Assembly (NCBI GenBank): GCA_943704425.1
Contig: CALSCP010000837.1
Location: forward strand, 1-63,856
Reading direction: 5' to 3'
Length of the DNA stretch: 63,856 nt
DNA from: Ministeria vibrans ATCC 50519
Lineage: Eukaryota; Protista; Filasterea
The notes below the pieces were generated by a model. The model was not told where the DNA came from and ran no database searches. It saw nothing but the letters and a program-made list of their open reading frames with translations. Position 1 is the first letter of the stretch; each line of letters starts with the position of its first letter. Positions 24,290 to 35,161 of the stretch are shown piece after piece. The position numbers were made by a program, and so were the translations under genes.

Positions 24290-26062
24290 GGAGAAAGAAA
24301 CAAAGTGATAGAGAGAAAGGAGGGAAAGAAGAAACAAAGTGATAGAGAGAGGAGGGGGAGAAGAAACAAAGTGATAGAGAGAGAGAGTGTGTGTGTGTGT
24401 GTTTAAGTATAATGATAATAAAGAAGAATTAATGCTCTTTTTCAAAATCAATCGGAATGGATCATCCACAAACACACTCAAGCCTAACAATAATGTCTCT
24501 GCCTTTATAATTGCACTCTTGCATACCTCATACGACGGAGAGTGTTGCTCGGAGGGCTCTGCACCAAAAAAGGCACTCCAATACAAATCAATAGGACCAG
24601 TGGGCGAAATGGCCTCAAGACCCACTGTCAGATGCACCGAGTAGCCCTTTCGACTAGAGGCAGAAATACATGAGAAGTGCGAGTCATTATTGTAAACGTA
24701 TGGTCTTACTTGAGCTGTGTTGACGTGGCATGAACTGCCCCTCTCGGCACATACAGTATATCCCCAGCACATACTGTGCGGTTCACCAAAGCCGCTCCCA
24801 ATTCATTGACACTCAACAGACTCGATTGTTCTAAAAAAACAATGAATCACTGTCATTATTATTCTCTCTCAAACTCTTACCTTTTCCAACGTCTTTTCGG
24901 ACTGGAAGCGCATACTGATTCGTATCCCACACAAACCATTTCTTACACCCTTCCAATTGCACAATAAAGACATCCTAACCATCAATATTAAAACACTAGT
25001 CAGTAGGTTACAGACATACAAAAAAAAAAAAAAAAAAAAAAAAGCTCAGACCTGTTTATCAGTGTGCGGAACCATTGCGACCTCAAGACCCATTGGCGAC
25101 AGATACGCATTAGTGTTGGACGGCAGATTAAACACCCGTGTCATGTTTATATTGAGTTCCGCCACTTTGGGAAGCCATCCGGTGACAGAATTGAGAACTG
25201 CAGAACGACTGTTTGACACACAGAGTAACAACACAAAAAAAAAGAAAATAATTGGTTCTGGTCCTTATTTTTGCTTTGTTGATTACCCTCTGTTGATCAT
25301 CAGCTTGACACAATTGTCTGTGCAGGGATCGGGGACCGACGGCTGACCGGGCGTGAGAATGTTCTCGGCAAAGGTGCCGGCAAGAAAGTAAACATTGGGT
25401 CGGTGAACACCCGCAACGTCGTGCGATAGTGTCAGGATTTCCTCCTCAATGTCGCGCCACGTGAGCGTACCGGCAAACGTATCGGGATGCACACGAAGAA
25501 GAACCGGTTTCTTCTCCCAGAACCGCCGACGGAACTCATCTGAGGCAATGACGCCAAAGAAGTCCCGTCGAGTGCGCTTGCCAGGCACCTCAATCACCGT
25601 ATCGTTCTCCAGCAGCCGCAGCGGCCCACCATTGCTCCCACGAAACCACTCATTGCTGCCATCGTCCCCACCGGCGTGTTCGGCGGCCGCGGCATAGCGT
25701 GCCTTCTTCTCGAGCGGAGTGCGAGGCGCAGCAATGCCCGACTCCAGCGAGCCCCGCACCACCCCGAGAATTTCTCGTCTCATCGCGCGCGCCTGCTTGC
25801 CTAGCGCACCGCCTTCCACCAGACCAAGCATGTCGAGGGCCTTGCCATACTGGGCCACCTTGGTCTGCAGCTTGGCACACAGCAGCGTGTCCTTGGGCGA
25901 AATACCGTCAACGCCAAACGTCACTTGCTTGTAGCACTCGCGCGCCGCCAGCGCCGTGTCGCCGTCCGCATACGCTTGGCGAGCCGCATCCAGCGCGTGC
26001 CTCGACGCCACACTCGAGGTGATGGCCGCGAGTGAGGTCAGACAGAGCAGAAGCGACAGCAT
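23789..26062 (-). CDS. Signal-peptide-bearing JmjC/cupin_4 (ROX/NO66/YcfD-like) 2-oxoglutarate oxygenase with N-terminal TPR-like region
   Basis: Signal-like N-terminus MLSLLLCLTSLAAITSSVA. Motifs across several exons: EFRRRFWEKKPVLLR, NTNAYLSP...PHTDKQ|DVFIVQLEGCKKW, GDILYVPRGAVH, SVHLTVG. The 3' end is inferred from splicing. Confidence 0.75.
24198..24401. repeat. (GA)n + AAACAAAGTGATAGAGA units + (GT)n in an intron
   Basis: Directly visible. Confidence 0.9.
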
Positions 26063-26519
26063 CAAAAAGTTTGACAAGTTTGACAAGTACCGATGACCGT
26101 CTATCTGTTCATTGTTATCGAATGTCGATCTTGTAACAAATTTGAAAATCCCAAAAGTAATCACTCATTTCTCAAACTAGCACCTTTTTTCTCTGTGCCT
26201 CGTTGTCGCGTGCGCCCATAAGCATCAAGGCACTCGCCAACACGTTACACGACACCGGCAGCGTCGCTGCTCCTCTCCAGCCGCTCCTGAAGAGCTTTTC
26301 CGTCCAATCCAATGCGTAAAAAACACATTTGAGATTCTCCACCGCCTTCATTTTGTTCCATCTTGACGCATCTTTGTTCCTGTGACACACTCCTTGCACA
26401 TCCGTTTGTTTTCCTCTTTCATTTTCTTCTCTTTCCCCTCCTTTTTTTTTTTTNNNNNNNNNNGACAGCGGATTGGAGGCAATCTCGGACAGGCGTGCTT
26501 CTTCATTTTTTTTTCTCAG

Positions 26520-29500
26520 CTCGCCTCGACGCACTCATCGTCGCTCGCCTCTACTACACCGCGCTGGACGCCTTCGGCGATCTTGAAGAGGTTGCTGTGT
26601 CGGCGCGCAACCTCGCAGTGAGCCTGTGTGCAGCAGGGTACTTTGTGTTGGTCGAAGCGGACTTCTCGCTGCACGACTGCCTCCACAAATTCGATCCTCC
26701 TGGCAATCCTGACCTGCCGACGCACCGCAAACGCCAAGACGCCGCTCTCAACTTCCAGACAGCACATCGCCTGCACTGGCACAGCAGCGGCACCAGCGCC
26801 GACACCATCTCAGGCGGTCTTGCGCTTCTCGCCACACTCGACGACAAGGGCACGTCTCTCAAAGCGCCTCCGCAGAAAAACGACCAACTCCTTGTCTACA
26901 TCATGGGCCATGGGGAAGGAGGCGGCGTTGTGCTTGACGACGCAAAGTACGACAGTGTCACCGACACCCACTTGGACCTCTACACTCTCGAAAAGCTTCG
27001 CGTCGCAACCCAGCCGTGGCAACGCGTTTTCGTCGCTCTTGACTGCTGCCAAGCGGGTGCCGCACACTCTGCACACGTTGGTGCACACTATTTGTCTCTT
27101 CAACACGGAGAGGGCAACAACCTCCCTGCTGAACTCAGCGGCCAGTCTTGCTTTCTGCTCCTCACCTCGGTCGTATTCGACCAACTCAGCTGGGCCTACG
27201 CTCACCATGGCACACTCCTCCAAATTGCCATGCGCGACGTGTTTCTCAATTCGGATGCGTTTGGTGGCAAACACTGGTCGACTCTCGGTTCATTGATGGC
27301 TAAGGCGACATCCAAAATGATTTATCATTGCACCGACCCACCGGCCTCTGCTGGCATGCACTCCATCGGTTGTCGTCTTGAGCGTCTCGGATTGTCTTGG
27401 GGTACAACCAACACGGGTGAGTACATTCTGTACAATCCTTCGCTCACTCCCACGACAGCTCCATGCATCCTCTCTCCGATTGCCGACCTTGCCTCACCGC
27501 TTACCTTTTCGATCCGCGACCACACCAAGTCACGTCACATTCTCATCGTCACACCCAGTGACACGTACACGTCCCTCTCCCCCGCCCTGCTGGCTGCTTG
27601 TCGCTGCAACATTGCAGAGCCACTTTCCCCTTTTCGCGTGTGGTCAGATAGCACCGGCTGCTACAGTCTGCACTGCCACGCCACTCCAACTTCTCTCACA
27701 TTTCTTCTTGTTGCGCGTGTCGTCAAGCCCAAGTCGTGCGTCGCTGATCTCGCGCTGCGGTGGCAACCCGACGTCATCGAGTACTACCCTTTTGAAAGCG
27801 CGCAAACTAACCGCGTCGTTGTTGCTCGCGAGTTCATTGTGAACTCTACACACGCCGTGCATTCCCGATTGCCAGATGTTGCGTTTGACCGACTCGGCCG
27901 CATTTCGCAGTCACTGGGCAGCCTTTTTTTACCGCGTACAACCAAATTTCCTTTGCCGGATGCAATTATTACCATTCGTCCGCGTGAAACAGTGATGACT
28001 GTTTGTAATCGTGCCCAGGGGCAAGTTCTCTCCTCTGTTCCATACGTTATGCAGGAGATGGGCAATTGCACCTGCAAGGACTGTGACCGATGCCGCGTCC
28101 GCCGTCTCGTTATTCTTACCACCTCCAGTGCACAACCAACTGACGACGAGCGTGTCGCTCTTTTCTACGCCTCTGCGGCACTCTCGTCCCAGCTCCTTCC
28201 TGTCACATTCCTTACCCGTGACATTCCCTCAAAGTCTGTGCGATTTGATGCCATCTTTCGCAACCCAAACGAGAAGCAGTTCGATTCAGTTCGCGCCGAA
28301 ATTTTGACCGCTCTCCGTTCTTTTCTAAGGCGCCACACTCCAGCCACTCATGCACCCCTTTGCTTTCGTCATATGTATGTGCATGTTGGAACCAACGCCA
28401 CCCTCTCACTCAACCTCGAGACCTCTCCCTGGCTTCTCTGGGCACTTCAGTCCTCGCCAGTCGACGCACTTCGCTTGCTTGGCTTTGACTCCATCAAAGA
28501 AGCGAAACATTCATCGTTCATGTCTATCGTGCTGCGTGCGCGCGATGCTACTGCAGATGTGCGGTTATTTTCAAGCAGCGAAATGAAGTCAATCGCTCAG
28601 TCTGTTGTCGATTTTGCGCGCTCCAATTGGTTCTCCAGTCACAACGAGCCCATCCAGCCATTTATTCATCTGTCCACCGCCTCGCAGTCGCTTCACGTTT
28701 TCTTTGACATTCCCGAAAGTCTTGAAGTGCGAGCCCGACAAGCCATTGCAAAAAATAGCAAATCACCGTTTTTTATTGATAATCGCGTGGTCATGAGCGC
28801 TCAAGTGGTGTACAAAGGTGAAGTTGAGCACATGCGCGCGTTGGCCGAACAGCTTGCTGCTCATGCTCGAGATCTTGCGCACGACACTCTTCTGGATACT
28901 GTCGAGGACCGCGCAAGGGAGTTGTACAGAGGCGATTTTGGCGTGCGCCCTCTCCATCATGTTCTTGTGGATGCGGTCCGGTTCGACTTGCTCGACACAG
29001 TGAAGGCACTCGCTCTTCTTCCCTTCAGCGACACTGACCCTGCGCGCCTTATTGATGTTGCCACTCACGAAGGTGAGTCTGCGCTTGTGGTTGCTGCCCG
29101 ACATGATGCCATTAAGACTGTTGAGTGGCTGTTGGTGAACAAAGTGGTCTCGTTAACTGATGATGCACCTCGCGTCGCACAAGCAGCATTTGACTCGGAC
29201 GCAGCTCAGACCGTCTCCCTGCTTTACAAGGACTACCCGTTCTACTTCACGGACTTCTCTCCGCTTTCCCTGACAAGCGGGTTTGTTCGCCACCTTGTGC
29301 AGGACGAAAAGCTTGCCGTTGCCTTTTGGGTGTGTGAACGCCTTGGGCTCGAACTGACTGATTTCTCTGTGGGCGTGCTCAAGAGTGTGTCTGTGAAAAT
29401 GGAAAATGCGCACTCTTGGGCCGATTGGCACATTCGCCTTGCCTGCCAGTACCTCAAGAAAGGATCAAGTGCAAGTCAAGCCGGTGTGAAAGCATTTGAA

Positions 29501-32500
29501 CACGCCAAAGAGGCTCTCTCATTCGCTTTTGACGACCATCGCCGCCTTCTTGCTCTTCGCCTACTCGCCGATCTTGAAAAATGGGACACCATCGTCGAGT
29601 GTGTCAAGCCTCTGAGTCACCACATTTACGACCGGGAAATTCGCTTGCTCTATGCCTGTGCTCGCTACCAGATTGGTTCTGGTGACACTGCCATTTCGGA
29701 TCTGCTGCTTCTTTTGTCGGCGGATGAACTCGTTGTCGATGATTCCGTTGGTCAAATGTTTGCAAAAAGATGTGACGTGTTGTCAGTGCTTTCGCTGGTG
29801 CTCATTGGCCGTGCTGTTGAACAGCGACTGCAGCTCTGTGAGAACGTGTTTTTGAACGTCATCCACGAAGGTTTGCGTGATGATGTACGACAGGCATGCA
29901 AAGAGTGGCTGACTGCGACCAATGGAGATGGGATGTCCCAACTGCCTTGGCTGAGATGGACTCATCGAGAGCAGATTGCACTTGCTGGAGCGCTCAGCAT
30001 GCCTGCCAGTGACAGAGAAGCGCTTGAGACTGAGGCTGCTGAAGGTGGTTACTCTATCGCTGATCGTCAACGTGGGTTCGAATTGAGTGCTAGGCTTGTT
30101 GAACGGCAGCCACTTTCAGATGAGGAGGTTGCAGTAGTTTCCGCGCTCTTGAGCGGTACGATACGCCGCGATTTGTGGCAGGAAACGGTCGGATACTTGC
30201 AGGTGCTGGATCTCTCAAACGTGTTGGATGGACGTCTTCCAGACTGCTTGCAAGAGACCACGCTGCAGGTCAAGATTCTGAATTTGAGCAACAACTCACT
30301 GCCAGAGTTGCCATCGTCCCTATTTCAGTCGACCACACAGCTCCACCGCCTCATCCTTGACAACAATCTGTTGACCCTTCTTCCGCCATCTATTGGGCAC
30401 TGCTCCAATCTCGTTACTCTTTCTGTTGCACGCAATCGACTCGAGACCCTCCCCGAGTCCCTCTCTCAGCTGCGCTACCTCCGTGAGATTAACTTGGGTG
30501 GCAACTCTCTTCCTTTTCACGCACTTCGTGTTCTTGCGCATCTGTCCGAATCACTCCAGCTGCTTGTCATGCTGCTCGAAGACGGCGCGCTTGTGTCCGA
30601 CGCACGATTGTGGTGTGCGGAATCTGCGGCCCGTGCTCGCGTGAATCTTGATCGTCTTGGATTCGGTAGGTGGGTGTTGTTGAATCTGCCGATTAAAACT
30701 TATCTGTTTCTTTTTTTTTTTTTCAGATATGGTCAATGAGAGACGATGCGATGGCTTGTTTTCAGGTGCATTTGGCATGACGATTGTAATTGGTGGTGAA
30801 GGTGAATCTGGCAAGACGACTTTTTTTCGTGGCATGTTGCGCAAAGACTTTGTGGAGAAGCATCGCAAGACCTGGTATGCGTCGGTGTCCTATTGTGACA
30901 CCGTTGTGGAGCGTGACGAAGAGGTGTCGCTTGTTGAACATCGTACGCTGCGAACTGACGATGCCTCCAAAACGACTGTGTCGGAATTGTCTTGGGAAAA
31001 TTCCGTAGTGAAACAGCGCATCCACTACCTTGCGCAAGAGCGGATCGAGAAAGAGAACTGCGAGGCCGAGAGTGTCATTGAGAAGAAAGAAGAAGTGCCA
31101 AAGGAAGAAGAAACCAACGCGCGCCTGGACTCACCGCTGGCTATGCCCTTATTCAATCATTCCGTGTCGGGGAGCGACCGCGCATCTACGATTGACCCGC
31201 CGTCTGAACCTGCTGCATTACCCCGTATCACTCTTGAGTCACGGCCAGATGTCCCATCCAGCGCTGGCGATGACGATGCGCGCTTTGTGACGCCCTGCGA
31301 TGGGTATGGGCGCCTTGTGGCAAGTGCCCGTCATGCTGTGTTGCCACGGATCGCCTTTATTGATTTGGGCGGCCAGAAGCAGTTTCGTGCCGTGCAGTCC
31401 ATCATTCCGTTCGCGTCGTCGCTCTATGTTGTCGTCGTTGATCTTGAGAAGATGCATTCAACGCCTAATGAGGAGATGAAAAAGCTGGAGGAGTGGTTCT
31501 TGCTTCCTTCTGCGAAGCAGGCGCGAGCTGTGATGGTGGTTGGCACGCATGCCAGTACGAGTGGCTTCAACTTTCACGCTGATGCGAGTGGCGGTGACGG
31601 CTTTAGGCTTGTAGAAAGCAAGGTGTCTCAGCTTTTGAAGCGGAATGAGTTGCGTTGGTTGGGTTCCAAGTGTATGTGGCCTGTGGACTATCGGACGGAG
31701 CTGTTTGTGCAGGAGGTGCGTGCTGAAGTGTTGCGAGCTGTGAAGGAAGTGAGCGCGCAAGTGCGGGCTTCGACCCAAGTTGCGACTGCAATTGACTCTG
31801 TCCAAGCACTCGCTGCACCTGGCGCTTTGAGCCTCTCGTTTGAAGCTGTAAAGCAGTGCGTGGAATCTATGCAGATTCCTGTTGTCCAGTACGTTTTTGA
31901 GGCCCAGCGTCTTGGTGCAGCATTCGTTGATCCACGAGTTCCTGAGTACGTATTTGTGGACGTGCCATCATTAGCGGATGCCGTCGGTCGAGTGTATAGT
32001 TGTGCACTTGAAGGACGACCAGACGCCCCCTCTGTTGGTCCCTCCTTGGACATTGATGTCCAGGATTTGCGTCGCACTGGTGCGTGGTCGGAGGCGCTGT
32101 TGGACTGGTCACTGTTGCACACCGACGTCTCCGACAAGGCGAGTTTGAGGGAACTCTTTTTGAAGTGTCAAGTTTTGCCCGTTGTTGAAGGTATTGAGCT
32201 TAGTTTGACTCATCAAGGAAATTCTTATTTTTTTGTTACATGTTTATAGTACTGGAATCGATCCAGGAATCTAGCACCAATATTCGCACCGGTTATAGCT
32301 ACGCAATAGTATTAGCTCGAGCCTTATACGACAAACGCGAACTTGAGCTCGACACCCTTGTAGGGGTCGCTTCCACCGCGCGAAACGTCGCTGTCGATCT
32401 TTGCCGCAACGGATTCAAGGTTGTCGTGATCGCTGACACGCCCATGACACTGCGACAACCCGCCTTCGACAACCCAGCGCTAGAGCAAAATTACGTCAAT

Positions 32501-35161
32501 GGCGCCATCCATGCCAAGCAGACCGGCGAGCTCCTGTGGGTCCATGACAATGCCACACGAGCGAATATTCGTGATGGGTTTGCCGCCCTGGCTACCATGG
32601 TGCCTGGTCACCTCCCAGCACCATACGACGAACTCGTCATTTACATTACGGGTCATGGTGTCGAGAACATCAACGGCTCGTGCGGTGTCGCCTTGAATGA
32701 AACTCGACGCATTCAGTCAATAGTCGATGTTGACGGTGTACAGAAGGGATTTGAGGGCGCGTACACGATGGAACAGCTACGCGACGATTTGGGCGTTGAC
32801 CGAGAGCAACGGTGGCGCAACACCCTCGTGGTGCTCGACTCAAGCCAGATTGGTGCTGATTTTGATATGTCACACGCGTGCACACGAAGTCGTGGCGTTG
32901 GAGAGACGCAAATGGTCCAAACTGCCTATCTATCAGAGTCATTTCATTGTCTCGCTCTCACGCCGAAGTCTCCCTCCTTTTGCACAGACTTTGGCACGGT
33001 GCTCTACGCGGCTCTGCGACGCGCATGGCTATCGCCTGGTAGTGACGGCGGCGCGTTTGGGCGCACGGGCGGCGAGGGGGCGGCGGAATGGGCTACGATC
33101 GGGTGTGTAGCGGACCGCGTCAACGTTGAGCTGGCGGCAATTCTGGCAGAGGTCGGAATTGGAAATGATTTCTTTCAGACTTCCGCACTCGGACGACTGG
33201 CATGGTGCACCAGCACGAATGTGGGAGAGTTTGTGGTGTTCAACAAGAACTACACGGAGCGGAACAAGCTGGCCATGGTGCCTGCTGTGCCGGCGAGTTT
33301 CACGGGACGCGCGAAGGAGTTGAGGCAGTTGGAGGCGCGACTGAAGCAGAGTGGGACTGCGGCGATTGGGAACCTGACGGTGTCGGCTGCGGGCGGAGTG
33401 GGCAAGAGCACACTGGCAGCGGAGTATGCGCGACGGAATGCGCACGAGTACCACTGGATCGTTTGGGTGCGTGGAACGAGTGCGACGGCGATGGTGGGAT
33501 CGTATCGGGAGGCAGTGCGGTACATTCCACTGAAACATGTGGATGCTGCTAGCGCAAAGGATGAGGAGGTGGTGGCGGCGATGCGAGAGTGGTTGTCGCA
33601 CGAGATAGGATGGTTGATGGTGGTGGACGGATGTGATGTGATCACAGACGAGATGAAGACGATGATGCCTGGTGGCGTGATGGAGGGGAAGATGATTGTG
33701 ACGACACGATTGCGGAGTGTGGATGAGCTGGGAGCGCTGTTTGAAGGAGGAGACGCACCAATGGAGCTGGGGGTATTTGATGAGGAAGAGGGAATGGAGT
33801 ACACGAGGAAGCGACTGCCGAAACGCGCGAGTGAAGGAGATGCGTTGAGGGATATCGTGCGTGCTGTAGGAGGAATGCCATTGGCGCTTGACTTGGCAAC
33901 AGCGTATCTGGCAGCGACGCCACATGTGAGTGCTGGAAGGTATCATGCACGGATGGCGACAGACAGATTGAATGCGTTGAAGAAGAGGAGTGGAGGAGGA
34001 GGATTGGAAGATCGGGTGCTGGCGACGTACGAGCCGAGTTTGGCGCGAGCGATGGAGATTGGAGGGAAGGAGATGGTGCGAAAGATGGTTGGAGTAATGG
34101 GGTTTCTGGAGGGGAGTGGGATGGAGGTGGAGGTGTTGCGATTGATGGTAACGGGGCAGAGAGAGGAAGAAGAGGCGGATGAGGATGCGTTTGATGTTGC
34201 TCTTGGGGCGTTATGTCGACTGTCCGTGGTTGATGTGAACGGGAGAGTGGTGTCGATGCATCAGTTGGTGCAGGATGTGTGTCGAGCGGTGGCATTTGGA
34301 GATGAGGAGGAGATGTGGAGTGAGTTGCAGAGGGTGGGGAGAGTGATAGGGGATGAGGTTACTTCTGACTCGAAGGTGTATGGAGATATGGAGTGGAGTC
34401 GACGAGTGGGAGTGCATGGAATGCGAGTGATGGAATGGGCGTGTGTCGAGGTGGGTAGAAGGCGGAAGGGTGGGCAGACGAAGGAGTATGGTGATGGCGT
34501 TGTGTGGCTGGGAATCCGATTGAGTGCAATGTGGCGGATGTTGGGGATGTACAAGTTGGCTCTTTGTGCTGCTGAGAATGCGTGTGATTGTGTGTATGAC
34601 AAGACATCAGTACTGGCTGCAAGTGCATTTGGGACATTGGGTACCGTCCANNNNNNNNNNNNNNNNNNNNNNNNNNNNNNNNNNNNNNNNNNNNNNNNNN
34701 NNNNNNNNNNNNNNNNNNNNNNNNNNNNNNNNNNNNNNTCCACAGGCGACACATTGAACAACATGGCTGGTGTGTTCAAGGCACAAGGAGACTACAGTCG
34801 TGCTCTTGAGTACTATGAGCGTGCGCTGACCATCCATGAGAAGTCTGTTGGCCCCGACCACCCATCCACAGGCGACACATTGAACAACATGGCCATTGTG
34901 TTCCAGGCACAAGGAGACTACAGTCGTGCTCTTGAGTACTATGAGCGTGCTCTGACCATCCGTGAGAAGTCTTTTGGTCCCGACCACCCATCTACAGGCG
35001 AGGCATTGAACAACATGGCTATTGTGTTCCGGGCTCGAGGAGACTACACTCGTGCTCTTGAGTACTCTGAGCGTGCCTCTGCTATCCGTGAGAAGTCTCT
35101 TGGTTCTGTCCGCTCGGTGCTCGGGCAGATAAGCGCCTCCCTCCCTCAATCGCGATCTTGA
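26520..35161 (+). CDS. Giant multidomain protein: caspase-fold (C14) - ANK - LRR - Roc GTPase/COR-like - second caspase-fold (Cys>Ser) - NB-ARC - TPR array
   Basis: Three track ORFs are joined in frame by phase-1 GT-AG introns at 30666-30726 and 32191-32249. Caspase-fold 1: YIMGHG, LDCCQAG. ANK: GESALVVAARHD. LRR: LNLSNNSL, LILDNNLL. Roc: GEGESGKTT, DLGGQ, VVGTH. Caspase-fold 2: YITGHG, LDSSQ. NB-ARC: GGVGKSTLA, WLMVVD, IVTTR, GGMPLAL, MHQLVQ. TPR: TGDTLNNMA. The true 5' end is obscured by an N gap. Confidence 0.8.
34739..35105 (+). repeat. Near-identical 126-nt TPR-coding tandem units adjacent to an assembly gap
   Basis: Units start at 34739, 34865 and 34991 (exact 126-nt period) with very high nucleotide identity; an N gap lies immediately upstream. 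Confidence 0.9.

Follow-up and report, generated by a model that had tools for sequence, protein, structure and literature searches.

In a stretch of DNA from the filasterean Ministeria vibrans ATCC 50519 (contig CALSCP010000837.1, positions 1 to 63,856 of the forward strand; "the window" refers to this whole stretch of 63,856 nucleotides (nt)), we found a locus on the + strand that is most likely a single gene with four coding exons. The predicted protein has about 2,840 residues. It begins with a caspase-fold domain, continues through a long helical region, leucine-rich repeats (LRRs), and a Roc-like GTPase, and ends with an NLR-like module: a second caspase-like domain that lacks the catalytic cysteine, an NB-ARC domain, and TPR repeats. 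Roco GTPases and NB-ARC/NLR proteins are two large families that combine a switch with repeats and that have links to immunity and cell death in organisms ranging from bacteria to humans. To our knowledge, they have so far been described as separate proteins. What appears to be new here is a Roco-like half and an NLR-like module on one chain, as each kind is already known. That there is one gene at this locus seems quite probable from the sequence comparisons below. We are moderately confident in the fuller account, which is one four-exon fused gene with this domain order and an NLR-like way of working.

Evidence for a single gene

Three open reading frames (ORFs) lie in series on the + strand, at 26363-30739, 30729-32249, and 32240-35161 (1458, 506, and 973 codons). 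Two short spacers with the signals of introns could join them. The first spacer is 61 nt, with GT at 30666 and AG at 30725-30726, and the second is 59 nt, with GT at 32191 and AG at 32248-32249. Both contain a T-rich tract, and both are in phase 1: each leaves one codon base upstream and two downstream, so the frames of all three ORFs join. With a putative mini-exon at the 5' end, the coding sequence sums to 4 + 4146 + 1464 + 2909 nt, which is 2,841 codons in frame without a stop. The lengths of the ORFs and the E-values of the domains at this locus are far beyond chance. An earlier note on this DNA had proposed that these three ORFs were joined by two phase-compatible GT-AG introns into a polypeptide of roughly 2,800 amino acids, and the spacers and frames agree with this; every motif that the note quoted is also found where it was placed. 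Its gene start, at 26520, is instead an exon start on the acceptor side, with an AG just before it. The features of the locus are:

26312-26315, +: putative first coding exon (ATG and one base), followed by the donor GTAAAA at 26316
26316-26519, +: putative 5' intron, by comparison to the paralogs, with a T-tract and CAG at its end and a 10-N gap (26454-26463) inside
26520-30665, +: exon A, an open frame of 4146 nt, with caspase-fold domain 1, a long helical region, and the LRRs
26522-27420, +: caspase-fold domain 1 (alignment, AF2 model, and Foldseek), with His130 (26909-26911) and Cys176 (27047-27049) retained and the motifs YIMGHG and LDCCQAG
27542-30200, +: about 890 residues without a significant match to any family, perhaps helical repeats of an ankyrin-like or another kind
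30206-30547, +: LRRs, about 5 units (LRR_8 at 33.4 bits, plus LRR_4 and LRR_14)
30666-30726, +: intron 1, 61 nt, GTAGGT...T-tract...CAG, phase 1; same position and phase in the paralogs C1075 and C2822
30727-32190, +: exon B, 1464 nt, with the Roc-like G domain and a COR-A-like domain
30780-31720, +: Roc-like GTPase, with G1 (GEGESGKTT, 30795-30821), G3 (DLGGQ, 31362-31376), and a G4-like motif (VGTHAS, 31539-31556)
31746-32189, +: COR-A-like helical domain with no COR-B after it (low-confidence model, Foldseek, and VIA)
32191-32249, +: intron 2, 59 nt, GTATTG...T-tract...TTATAG, phase 1; donor position and phase as in C1075
32250-35161, +: exon C, 2912 nt including the stop codon (TGA, 35159-35161), with the pseudo-caspase, NB-ARC, winged helix, and TPRs
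32252-33286, +: caspase-fold domain 2, a probable pseudo-protease, with His135 kept (32654-32656), Ser198 in place of the catalytic Cys (32843-32845), and the motif LDSSQIG
33317-33919, +: NB-ARC (Pfam, 41.7 bits, E = 1e-10), with Walker A (GGVGKST, 33392-33412), Walker B (WLMVVDG, 33611-33631), and GxP (GGMPLAL, 33869-33889)
34076-34288, +: winged helix (DUF7779, E = 0.0066), with the MHD-type motif SMHQLVQ at 34253-34273
34598-35113, +: TPR_12 array (Pfam, 158.6 bits), at least 4 units of 42 residues, broken by an assembly gap at 34651-34738

Comparison to paralogs also supports a single gene, as the earlier note had it. For the body of exon A, and likewise for the Roc exon, the genome contains exactly two paralogs, one on contig C1075 and one on C2822, and these are colinear throughout. 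Exon A is 48% and 45% identical to its two paralogs; for the Roc exon, identity to the window is 58% in C2822 and 49% in C1075. On C2822, one uninterrupted ORF of 950 codons holds Roc, NB-ARC, and DUF7779, and it aligns to the window's NB-ARC over 439 residues. Because this ORF is uninterrupted, the genome has a Roc-NB-ARC polypeptide that is independent of any intron call. On C1075, the two introns share their codon positions and phase with those of the window, and there is no ATG downstream of intron 2 before the core of the domain (the first ATG is inside the domain), which leaves the downstream exon without a usable start of its own. Two scaffolds of an independent metagenome assembly (ENA assembly ERZ23497376, sample SAMN09406036) are 99.4% identical to C1075, span both junctions, and confirm them. 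Either this organism or a strain nearly identical to it is thus represented in a public metagenome; beyond these scaffolds, we found nothing of this organism in the protein collections that we searched.

The 5' end was also assigned by comparison. Position 26520 follows a T-tract and a CAG acceptor, and there is no start codon there. Between the divergent upstream gene and 26519, the + strand has a single ATG, at 26312, which would give a mini first exon in phase 1. Both paralogs also have such an exon, in phase 1, and then an intron ahead of domain 1, in the same place and of similar length (roughly 215-240 nt). The upstream gene, on the minus strand, starts near 26062 and has a signal-peptide-like N-terminus; the two genes share about 250 nt of upstream region before the putative ATG at 26312.

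The two paralogs have each lost parts. In C2822 (L017:1582-4431), the Walker A lysine of NB-ARC is replaced by alanine (GGMGAST), and there is no internal caspase domain. C1075 keeps the P-loop, its domain 2 lacks both the His and the Cys, and its ORF ends without TPRs (L018:3310-5382). Given this decay, no copy but the window's has all of its modules intact. In C2822, the Roc-NB-ARC ORF is followed directly, after a possible GTATGT...TTTAG intron, by an ORF of 1,044 codons (L017:4542-7673) with another P-loop (GSTGAGKSS) at its start and a match to Peptidase_C14 (21.8 bits, with a cut-off of 21.4). It is possible that the C2822 gene extends into this ORF, which would give it a third NTPase and, instead of TPRs, a caspase domain at the C-terminus.

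Overall, the genome (roughly 30 Mb) has a fused subfamily of three genes beside an expanded family of stand-alone caspase-NB-ARC-TPR genes. All of the introns that we found in the three fused genes are in phase 1, so the exons are symmetric. Also, the N-terminal caspase-fold domains of C2822 and C1075 are near-identical over long stretches, while their Roc exons are far more divergent. The phase-1 introns and the uneven divergence suggest exon-level shuffling or gene conversion.

The caspase-fold domains

Similarity searches were run exon by exon. Domain 1 has a caspase fold according to its AlphaFold model, in which residues 1-175 have a pLDDT of 70-93. When this model was compared to known structures with Foldseek, caspases made up nearly all of the top matches, the others being the paracaspase MALT1 and PIGK (the GPI transamidase, of family C13), and the best match was 2nn3 (E = 2.7e-5, probability 1.00). 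His130 and Cys176 each lie just behind a beta strand, as in caspases, and the motifs resemble the metacaspase type. Domain 2 is homologous to domain 1 (26-27% identity, tblastn E about 1e-15), and by this homology it probably has the caspase fold as well. Both domains are also homologous to the N-terminal ends of a large family of paralogs.

The two domains differ in their catalytic residues. Domain 2 reads LDSSQIG where the stand-alone paralogs have LDTCHSG. The catalytic cysteine is kept in all 12 of the aligned N-terminal copies (9 stand-alone copies and the first domains of the 3 fused genes) and is lost in both of the internal copies. This pattern fits a change of role after fusion. The N-terminal domains of all three fused genes keep the histidine as well.

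This family of caspase-like domains is divergent. Neither of the window's domains matches the Peptidase_C14 model from Pfam at E = 0.1 or better. Among 13 aligned members of the family, 5 match Peptidase_C14 (best E = 1.1e-4) and 4 match Peptidase_C13. A profile of the caspase-like domain, compared to the sequences in PDB, found only caspase-2, at E = 0.24. Searches for relatives outside this organism found none, and the sole match (P0151) was the C1075 copy from the metagenome. So, where two C14 caspase-fold domains had been predicted, the fold is supported for domain 1 by its model and Foldseek and for domain 2 by homology, but there is no direct match to Peptidase_C14, and domain 2 has serine in place of cysteine. 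As for the proposed self-contained protease, the copy beside NB-ARC appears to be dead, so such an activity would need the distant N-terminal copy, which has the dyad.

The LRRs and the Roc-like GTPase

Between domain 1 and the LRRs, the long middle region has no clear identity. The ankyrin repeats that had been proposed are below threshold: in the middle region, which was also scanned in isolation, Ank_2 reaches only E = 0.046-0.16 in Pfam. In the ESM Atlas, the nearest clusters are of the ankyrin type (0.83-0.85), a lead and no more. Scanning the isolated middle and COR-like regions with Pfam at E = 10 gave nothing useful. The LRRs end about 120 nt ahead of the donor of exon A, and the G1 motif lies about 70 nt into exon B, so that the spliced protein would have its LRRs just before the G domain. 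The two sensor arrays of the earlier note, LRR and TPR, are both found by Pfam (LRR_8 at 33.4 bits and TPR_12 at 158.6 bits).

We describe exon B as a probable Roc-like GTPase with a tentative COR-A-like domain and without COR-B. The match to Roc has 28.6 bits (the cut-off is 27) and E = 1.9e-6, and it covers the second half of the model only. G1 and G3 are intact, while G4 reads GTHAS, with THAS for THxD, so that the aspartate is missing. (In LRRK2, G4 is GTHLD, which is similar except for the aspartate.) Between G1/switch I and G3, the G domain is split by about 150 inserted residues that are poorly conserved. In its P-loop segment, exon B can be aligned to the canonical Roco proteins of this genome (hhalign E = 8e-5), and the modeled G domain matches Ras-like domains with Z of about 9.

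For the region after the G domain, the evidence is structural. The best Foldseek matches of the exon B model are LRRK2, the Roco protein of C. tepidum, LRRK1, and Roco2 of M. barkeri (MbRoco2), with E from 4e-3 to 0.1. In VIA, residues 202-486 of the model superpose on residues 1331-1665 of LRRK2 (Z = 8.6). We take this part of LRRK2 to be Roc and COR-A, with COR-A ending at about 1665. The Pfam models for COR-A and COR-B do not match any of the three paralogs, and in C2822, NB-ARC begins about 40 residues after the end of the COR-A-like domain, which leaves no room for COR-B. A profile of the Roc-COR exon, compared to the sequences in PDB, found nothing relevant, and no relatives of this exon were found in an index of 5.8 billion proteins, with either the paralog's ORF or the window's exon as the query. 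In Roco proteins, dimers form through the COR-B part of COR. A full COR after Roc had been proposed; what the models suggest is the COR-A-like part, with the Pfam models silent. Dimerization by Roc-COR, which had also been proposed, has no basis here, as COR-B is missing and G4 lacks its aspartate.

The genome also has at least 4 canonical Roco genes (C1569, C2679, C1613, and C837:70000-78000) with strong matches to Roc and COR-B. Three of the 4 also match COR-A, and 3 of the 4 carry LRRs. One of them (C837:70000-78000) is on the same contig as the window, about 35 kb beyond the window's end.

The NB-ARC domain and the TPR array

Exon C alone has the tripartite layout of an NLR-like protein, with caspase-fold, NB-ARC, and TPR_12 in one ORF. 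All of the parts of the NLR-like module that the earlier note described are present: an effector-like domain, NB-ARC with intact Walker A, Walker B, GxP, and MHD motifs, and TPR repeats. The match to DUF7779 is stronger in the paralog C2822 (E = 9.8e-5) than in the window.

The TPR array is interrupted by an assembly gap (88 N, 34651-34738). By window coordinates, both flanks are in the same frame, and a TPR unit has already begun where the gap is reached. The last 67-111 nt ahead of the gap are matched at 100% identity by three unplaced mini-contigs (C2378, C1026, and C822). These contigs run 117, 82, and 42 nt past the gap's start, in frame, through one TPR unit of 42 residues, and so they bridge the gap. 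They reach the motif at which the sequence resumes after the gap, and the simplest tiling puts this motif at 34741, which matches the 88-N gap exactly. The same 27 bases recur one TPR unit later, at 34867. Because the repeat period is 126 nt, hidden extra TPR units would keep the frame. Thus, the presence and the frame of the TPRs are sure, and the number of units is uncertain.

The TPR DNA recurs at 87-92% identity in many arrays across the genome. The 3' flank is unique. Dozens of contigs under 250 nt (such as C302, C721, C169, C2492, C822, C1026, and C2378) are fragments of this family, from the end of NB-ARC or the TPRs. The caspase-NB-ARC-TPR family is a main cause of assembly breaks, so copy numbers are lower bounds.

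Alternative explanations

Several findings weigh against our account. The first coding exon is a guess. In the Roc-like domain, which had been called Roc, the Pfam match and the G1 and G3 motifs are present, but the aspartate of G4 is absent, the score is marginal, and the Roc model is not specific to Roco proteins, as it reports 74 stretches in this genome versus four Roco genes. Profile-profile comparison with the genome's canonical Roc-COR proteins failed past the P-loop, with the part after the insert left unaligned, and the exon B model is of low quality, with a pLDDT of 46 and confidence that becomes usable only past residue 230. Exon C is nearer to the stand-alone genes (47-76% identity for the caspase part) than to the module of C1075 (17-40%). 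Its NB-ARC part shares 76-91% identity with C556 and C2824, and in a tree its caspase part is sister to the stand-alone C1832 and C2844 (97/99 support). Also, the proposed intron 2 contains an ATG (32240) that is in frame with exon C and lies four codons ahead of the acceptor. Starting there would give exon C an N-terminus about as long as those of the stand-alone paralogs, which start 12-24 residues ahead of the first strand. The likeness of exon C to the stand-alone genes and the presence of this ATG would fit two adjacent genes: a Roco-like gene that ends at the TAG at 32247-32249, and, with its start at the ATG at 32240, a caspase-like-NB-ARC-TPR gene of the stand-alone family, which would have landed directly downstream or been converted there. 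It also fits that, among the fused copies, only the window's carries a TPR array. We consider two genes unlikely, if not strikingly so. The stand-alone genes have their own ATG and over 200 nt of AT-rich sequence upstream, while the ORFs at the window's junction overlap without intergenic space, which leaves none for a promoter or a terminator. Furthermore, the donor is at the exact position and phase of the C1075 intron, the spacer resembles the gene's other introns, the catalytic cysteine is lost in internal copies only, and C2822 proves the fusion as an ORF. The likeness of exon C to stand-alone genes points to a module that was acquired, or overwritten by conversion, after the fusion that is seen in C1075. 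Going by these identities, the module is a mosaic from recombination or gene conversion among paralogs. A comparison of the DNA upstream of domain 2 to the 5' ends of the stand-alone paralogs showed no homology.

Even if there is one fused gene, it might not encode a self-activating protease. The degenerate Roc-like domain and the dead caspase could serve as bait or scaffold, with output via partners such as the stand-alone paralogs; integrated decoys in plant NLRs are a model for this. Such a role would suit the THAS in place of THxD at G4, the 150-residue insert, the change from cysteine to serine in domain 2, the decay of the paralogs (C2822 without the Walker A lysine, C1075 without the dyad of domain 2 and without TPRs), and the large family of possible partners. 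We think it decidedly unlikely, because the N-terminal His and Cys are kept in 3 of the 3 fused genes, the window copy has both P-loops and all of the NB-ARC motifs intact, and the whole 8.5 kb is open, which argues for selection on the entire protein. As for a misjoined assembly of a repeated family, or a decaying and unexpressed pseudogene, the scaffold does have gaps, other loci match the NB-ARC and TPR parts at 87-92% identity, and many tiny contigs end in this family. However, the sequence from 26464 to 34650 is continuous, and the DNA at both junctions occurs nowhere else in the genome, which makes a repeat-driven chimera unlikely; the chimeric assembly that the earlier note had named as a possible refutation is not in evidence. 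There are also 2,841 codons without a stop, and the same architecture is found at two other loci, one of which is backed by an independent assembly. We consider an artefact or a pseudogene very improbable.

Comparison to known systems

We looked for other proteins with both Roc and NB-ARC. When we used HMMER to compare the C2822 ORF to 1.84 billion representatives, the best 150 of 6,369 matches had NB-ARC only, except for one Roc fragment from the same organism. Four long or multi-stretch matches from that search were scanned, and none had Roc; weaker or unsampled cases remain possible. The best relative of the paralog's NB-ARC outside this organism is an NB-ARC-TPR_12 protein of 890 residues, at 34% identity. 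The ESM Atlas had only NB-ARC clusters, with no Roc + NB-ARC cluster, and we found no report of a Roco + NB-ARC fusion in the literature. The combined architecture was unfamiliar to the earlier note, and it is likewise absent from the top library matches, the ESM Atlas, and the literature that we found.

The Roco-like half of the predicted protein resembles LRRK2, LRRK1, the Roco protein of C. tepidum, and the LRR-ROCO proteins of brown algae in its order of domains: the LRRs immediately precede a Ras-like G domain, for which Roc is the top match in Pfam. (LRRs ahead of Roc are usual in Roco proteins, though not required.) The G4 motif follows the LRRK2 pattern (GTH..), and the next helical domain, as modeled, superposes together with the G domain on Roc and COR-A of LRRK2. 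Unlike those proteins, the window's gene lacks COR-B, a kinase, a COR match in Pfam, and the aspartate of G4, and its G domain has the 150-residue insert. The genome's four canonical LRR-Roc-COR-B genes are clearly distinct from it. None of the Roco proteins in the literature that we found has an NB-ARC or caspase domain.

The other half shares Walker A and B, GxP, MHD, DUF7779, and TPR_12 repeats of 42 residues with the NB-ARC-TPR STAND proteins of Ectocarpus, Acanthamoeba, bacteria, and fungi. It differs in following a Roco-like half in the same reading frame. In brown algae and Acanthamoeba, ROCO and NB-ARC-TPR genes have been described as separate families of candidate receptors (PMC3341825, PMC11378527, PMC4053784).

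In bacteria, fusions of caspase homologs to STAND NTPases (metacaspases with NACHT or NB-ARC) have been reported (PMC3501461). The window's gene is like these in having a clan CD domain that is N-terminal to a STAND NTPase and repeats at the C-terminus, an arrangement that implies induced proximity. It is unlike them in that its caspase-like family is very divergent, the copy next to NB-ARC appears to be dead, and the apparently competent copy is about 1,900 residues upstream, beyond the GTPase. The apoptosome of Apaf-1 and caspase-9 is a split version of a caspase-STAND fusion. In another pair, c-FLIP and caspase-8, a catalytically dead caspase paralog pairs with an active one. Similarly, the window's gene has an active-looking domain and a homologous domain without the cysteine, but both are on one chain, where they might pair.

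How the protein might work

We propose a mechanism by analogy with Apaf-1, plant NLRs, and the bacterial caspase-STAND fusions (PMC3501461). The C-terminal half would be a STAND/NLR switch, in which the TPR array holds NB-ARC in a closed state with ADP bound. A ligand would free NB-ARC, ATP would bind, and the protein would oligomerize. This would gather the caspase-fold domains, and the N-terminal domain, which is the only copy that seems to be competent, would be activated by proximity. As the domain beside NB-ARC appears to be dead, the N-terminal domain would be the effector, perhaps paired with the dead copy, and so the internal pseudo-caspase might be a pairing platform.

Catalytically dead relatives serve as pairing platforms for caspase-8 and MALT1. 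The LRRs and the Roc-like unit could provide a second input or a gate. Given the degenerate G4 and the missing COR-B, the Roc-like unit may be a regulated scaffold rather than a dimerizing Roco GTPase.

A more ambitious version, which we think is rather unlikely, is a death switch on a single chain, assembled by shuffling of phase-1 exons. The protease would fire only if the LRR-coupled Roc-like GTPase and the TPR-coupled NB-ARC were both on, and the dead caspase would be a built-in partner. In other words, the protein would be a coincidence detector.

If our account is correct, then this gene would be a compact system for studying how a GTPase gate is coupled to an ATPase gate for oligomerization. 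It would also be a case from a microbial eukaryote of the caspase-STAND fusion, which is otherwise known from bacteria, and it would illustrate how new receptor architectures can be built from symmetric phase-1 exons and by gene conversion. If the protein is indeed a coincidence detector, then the logic of LRRK-type proteins and that of the apoptosome would be joined in a unicellular eukaryote, within a fast-evolving family of receptors.

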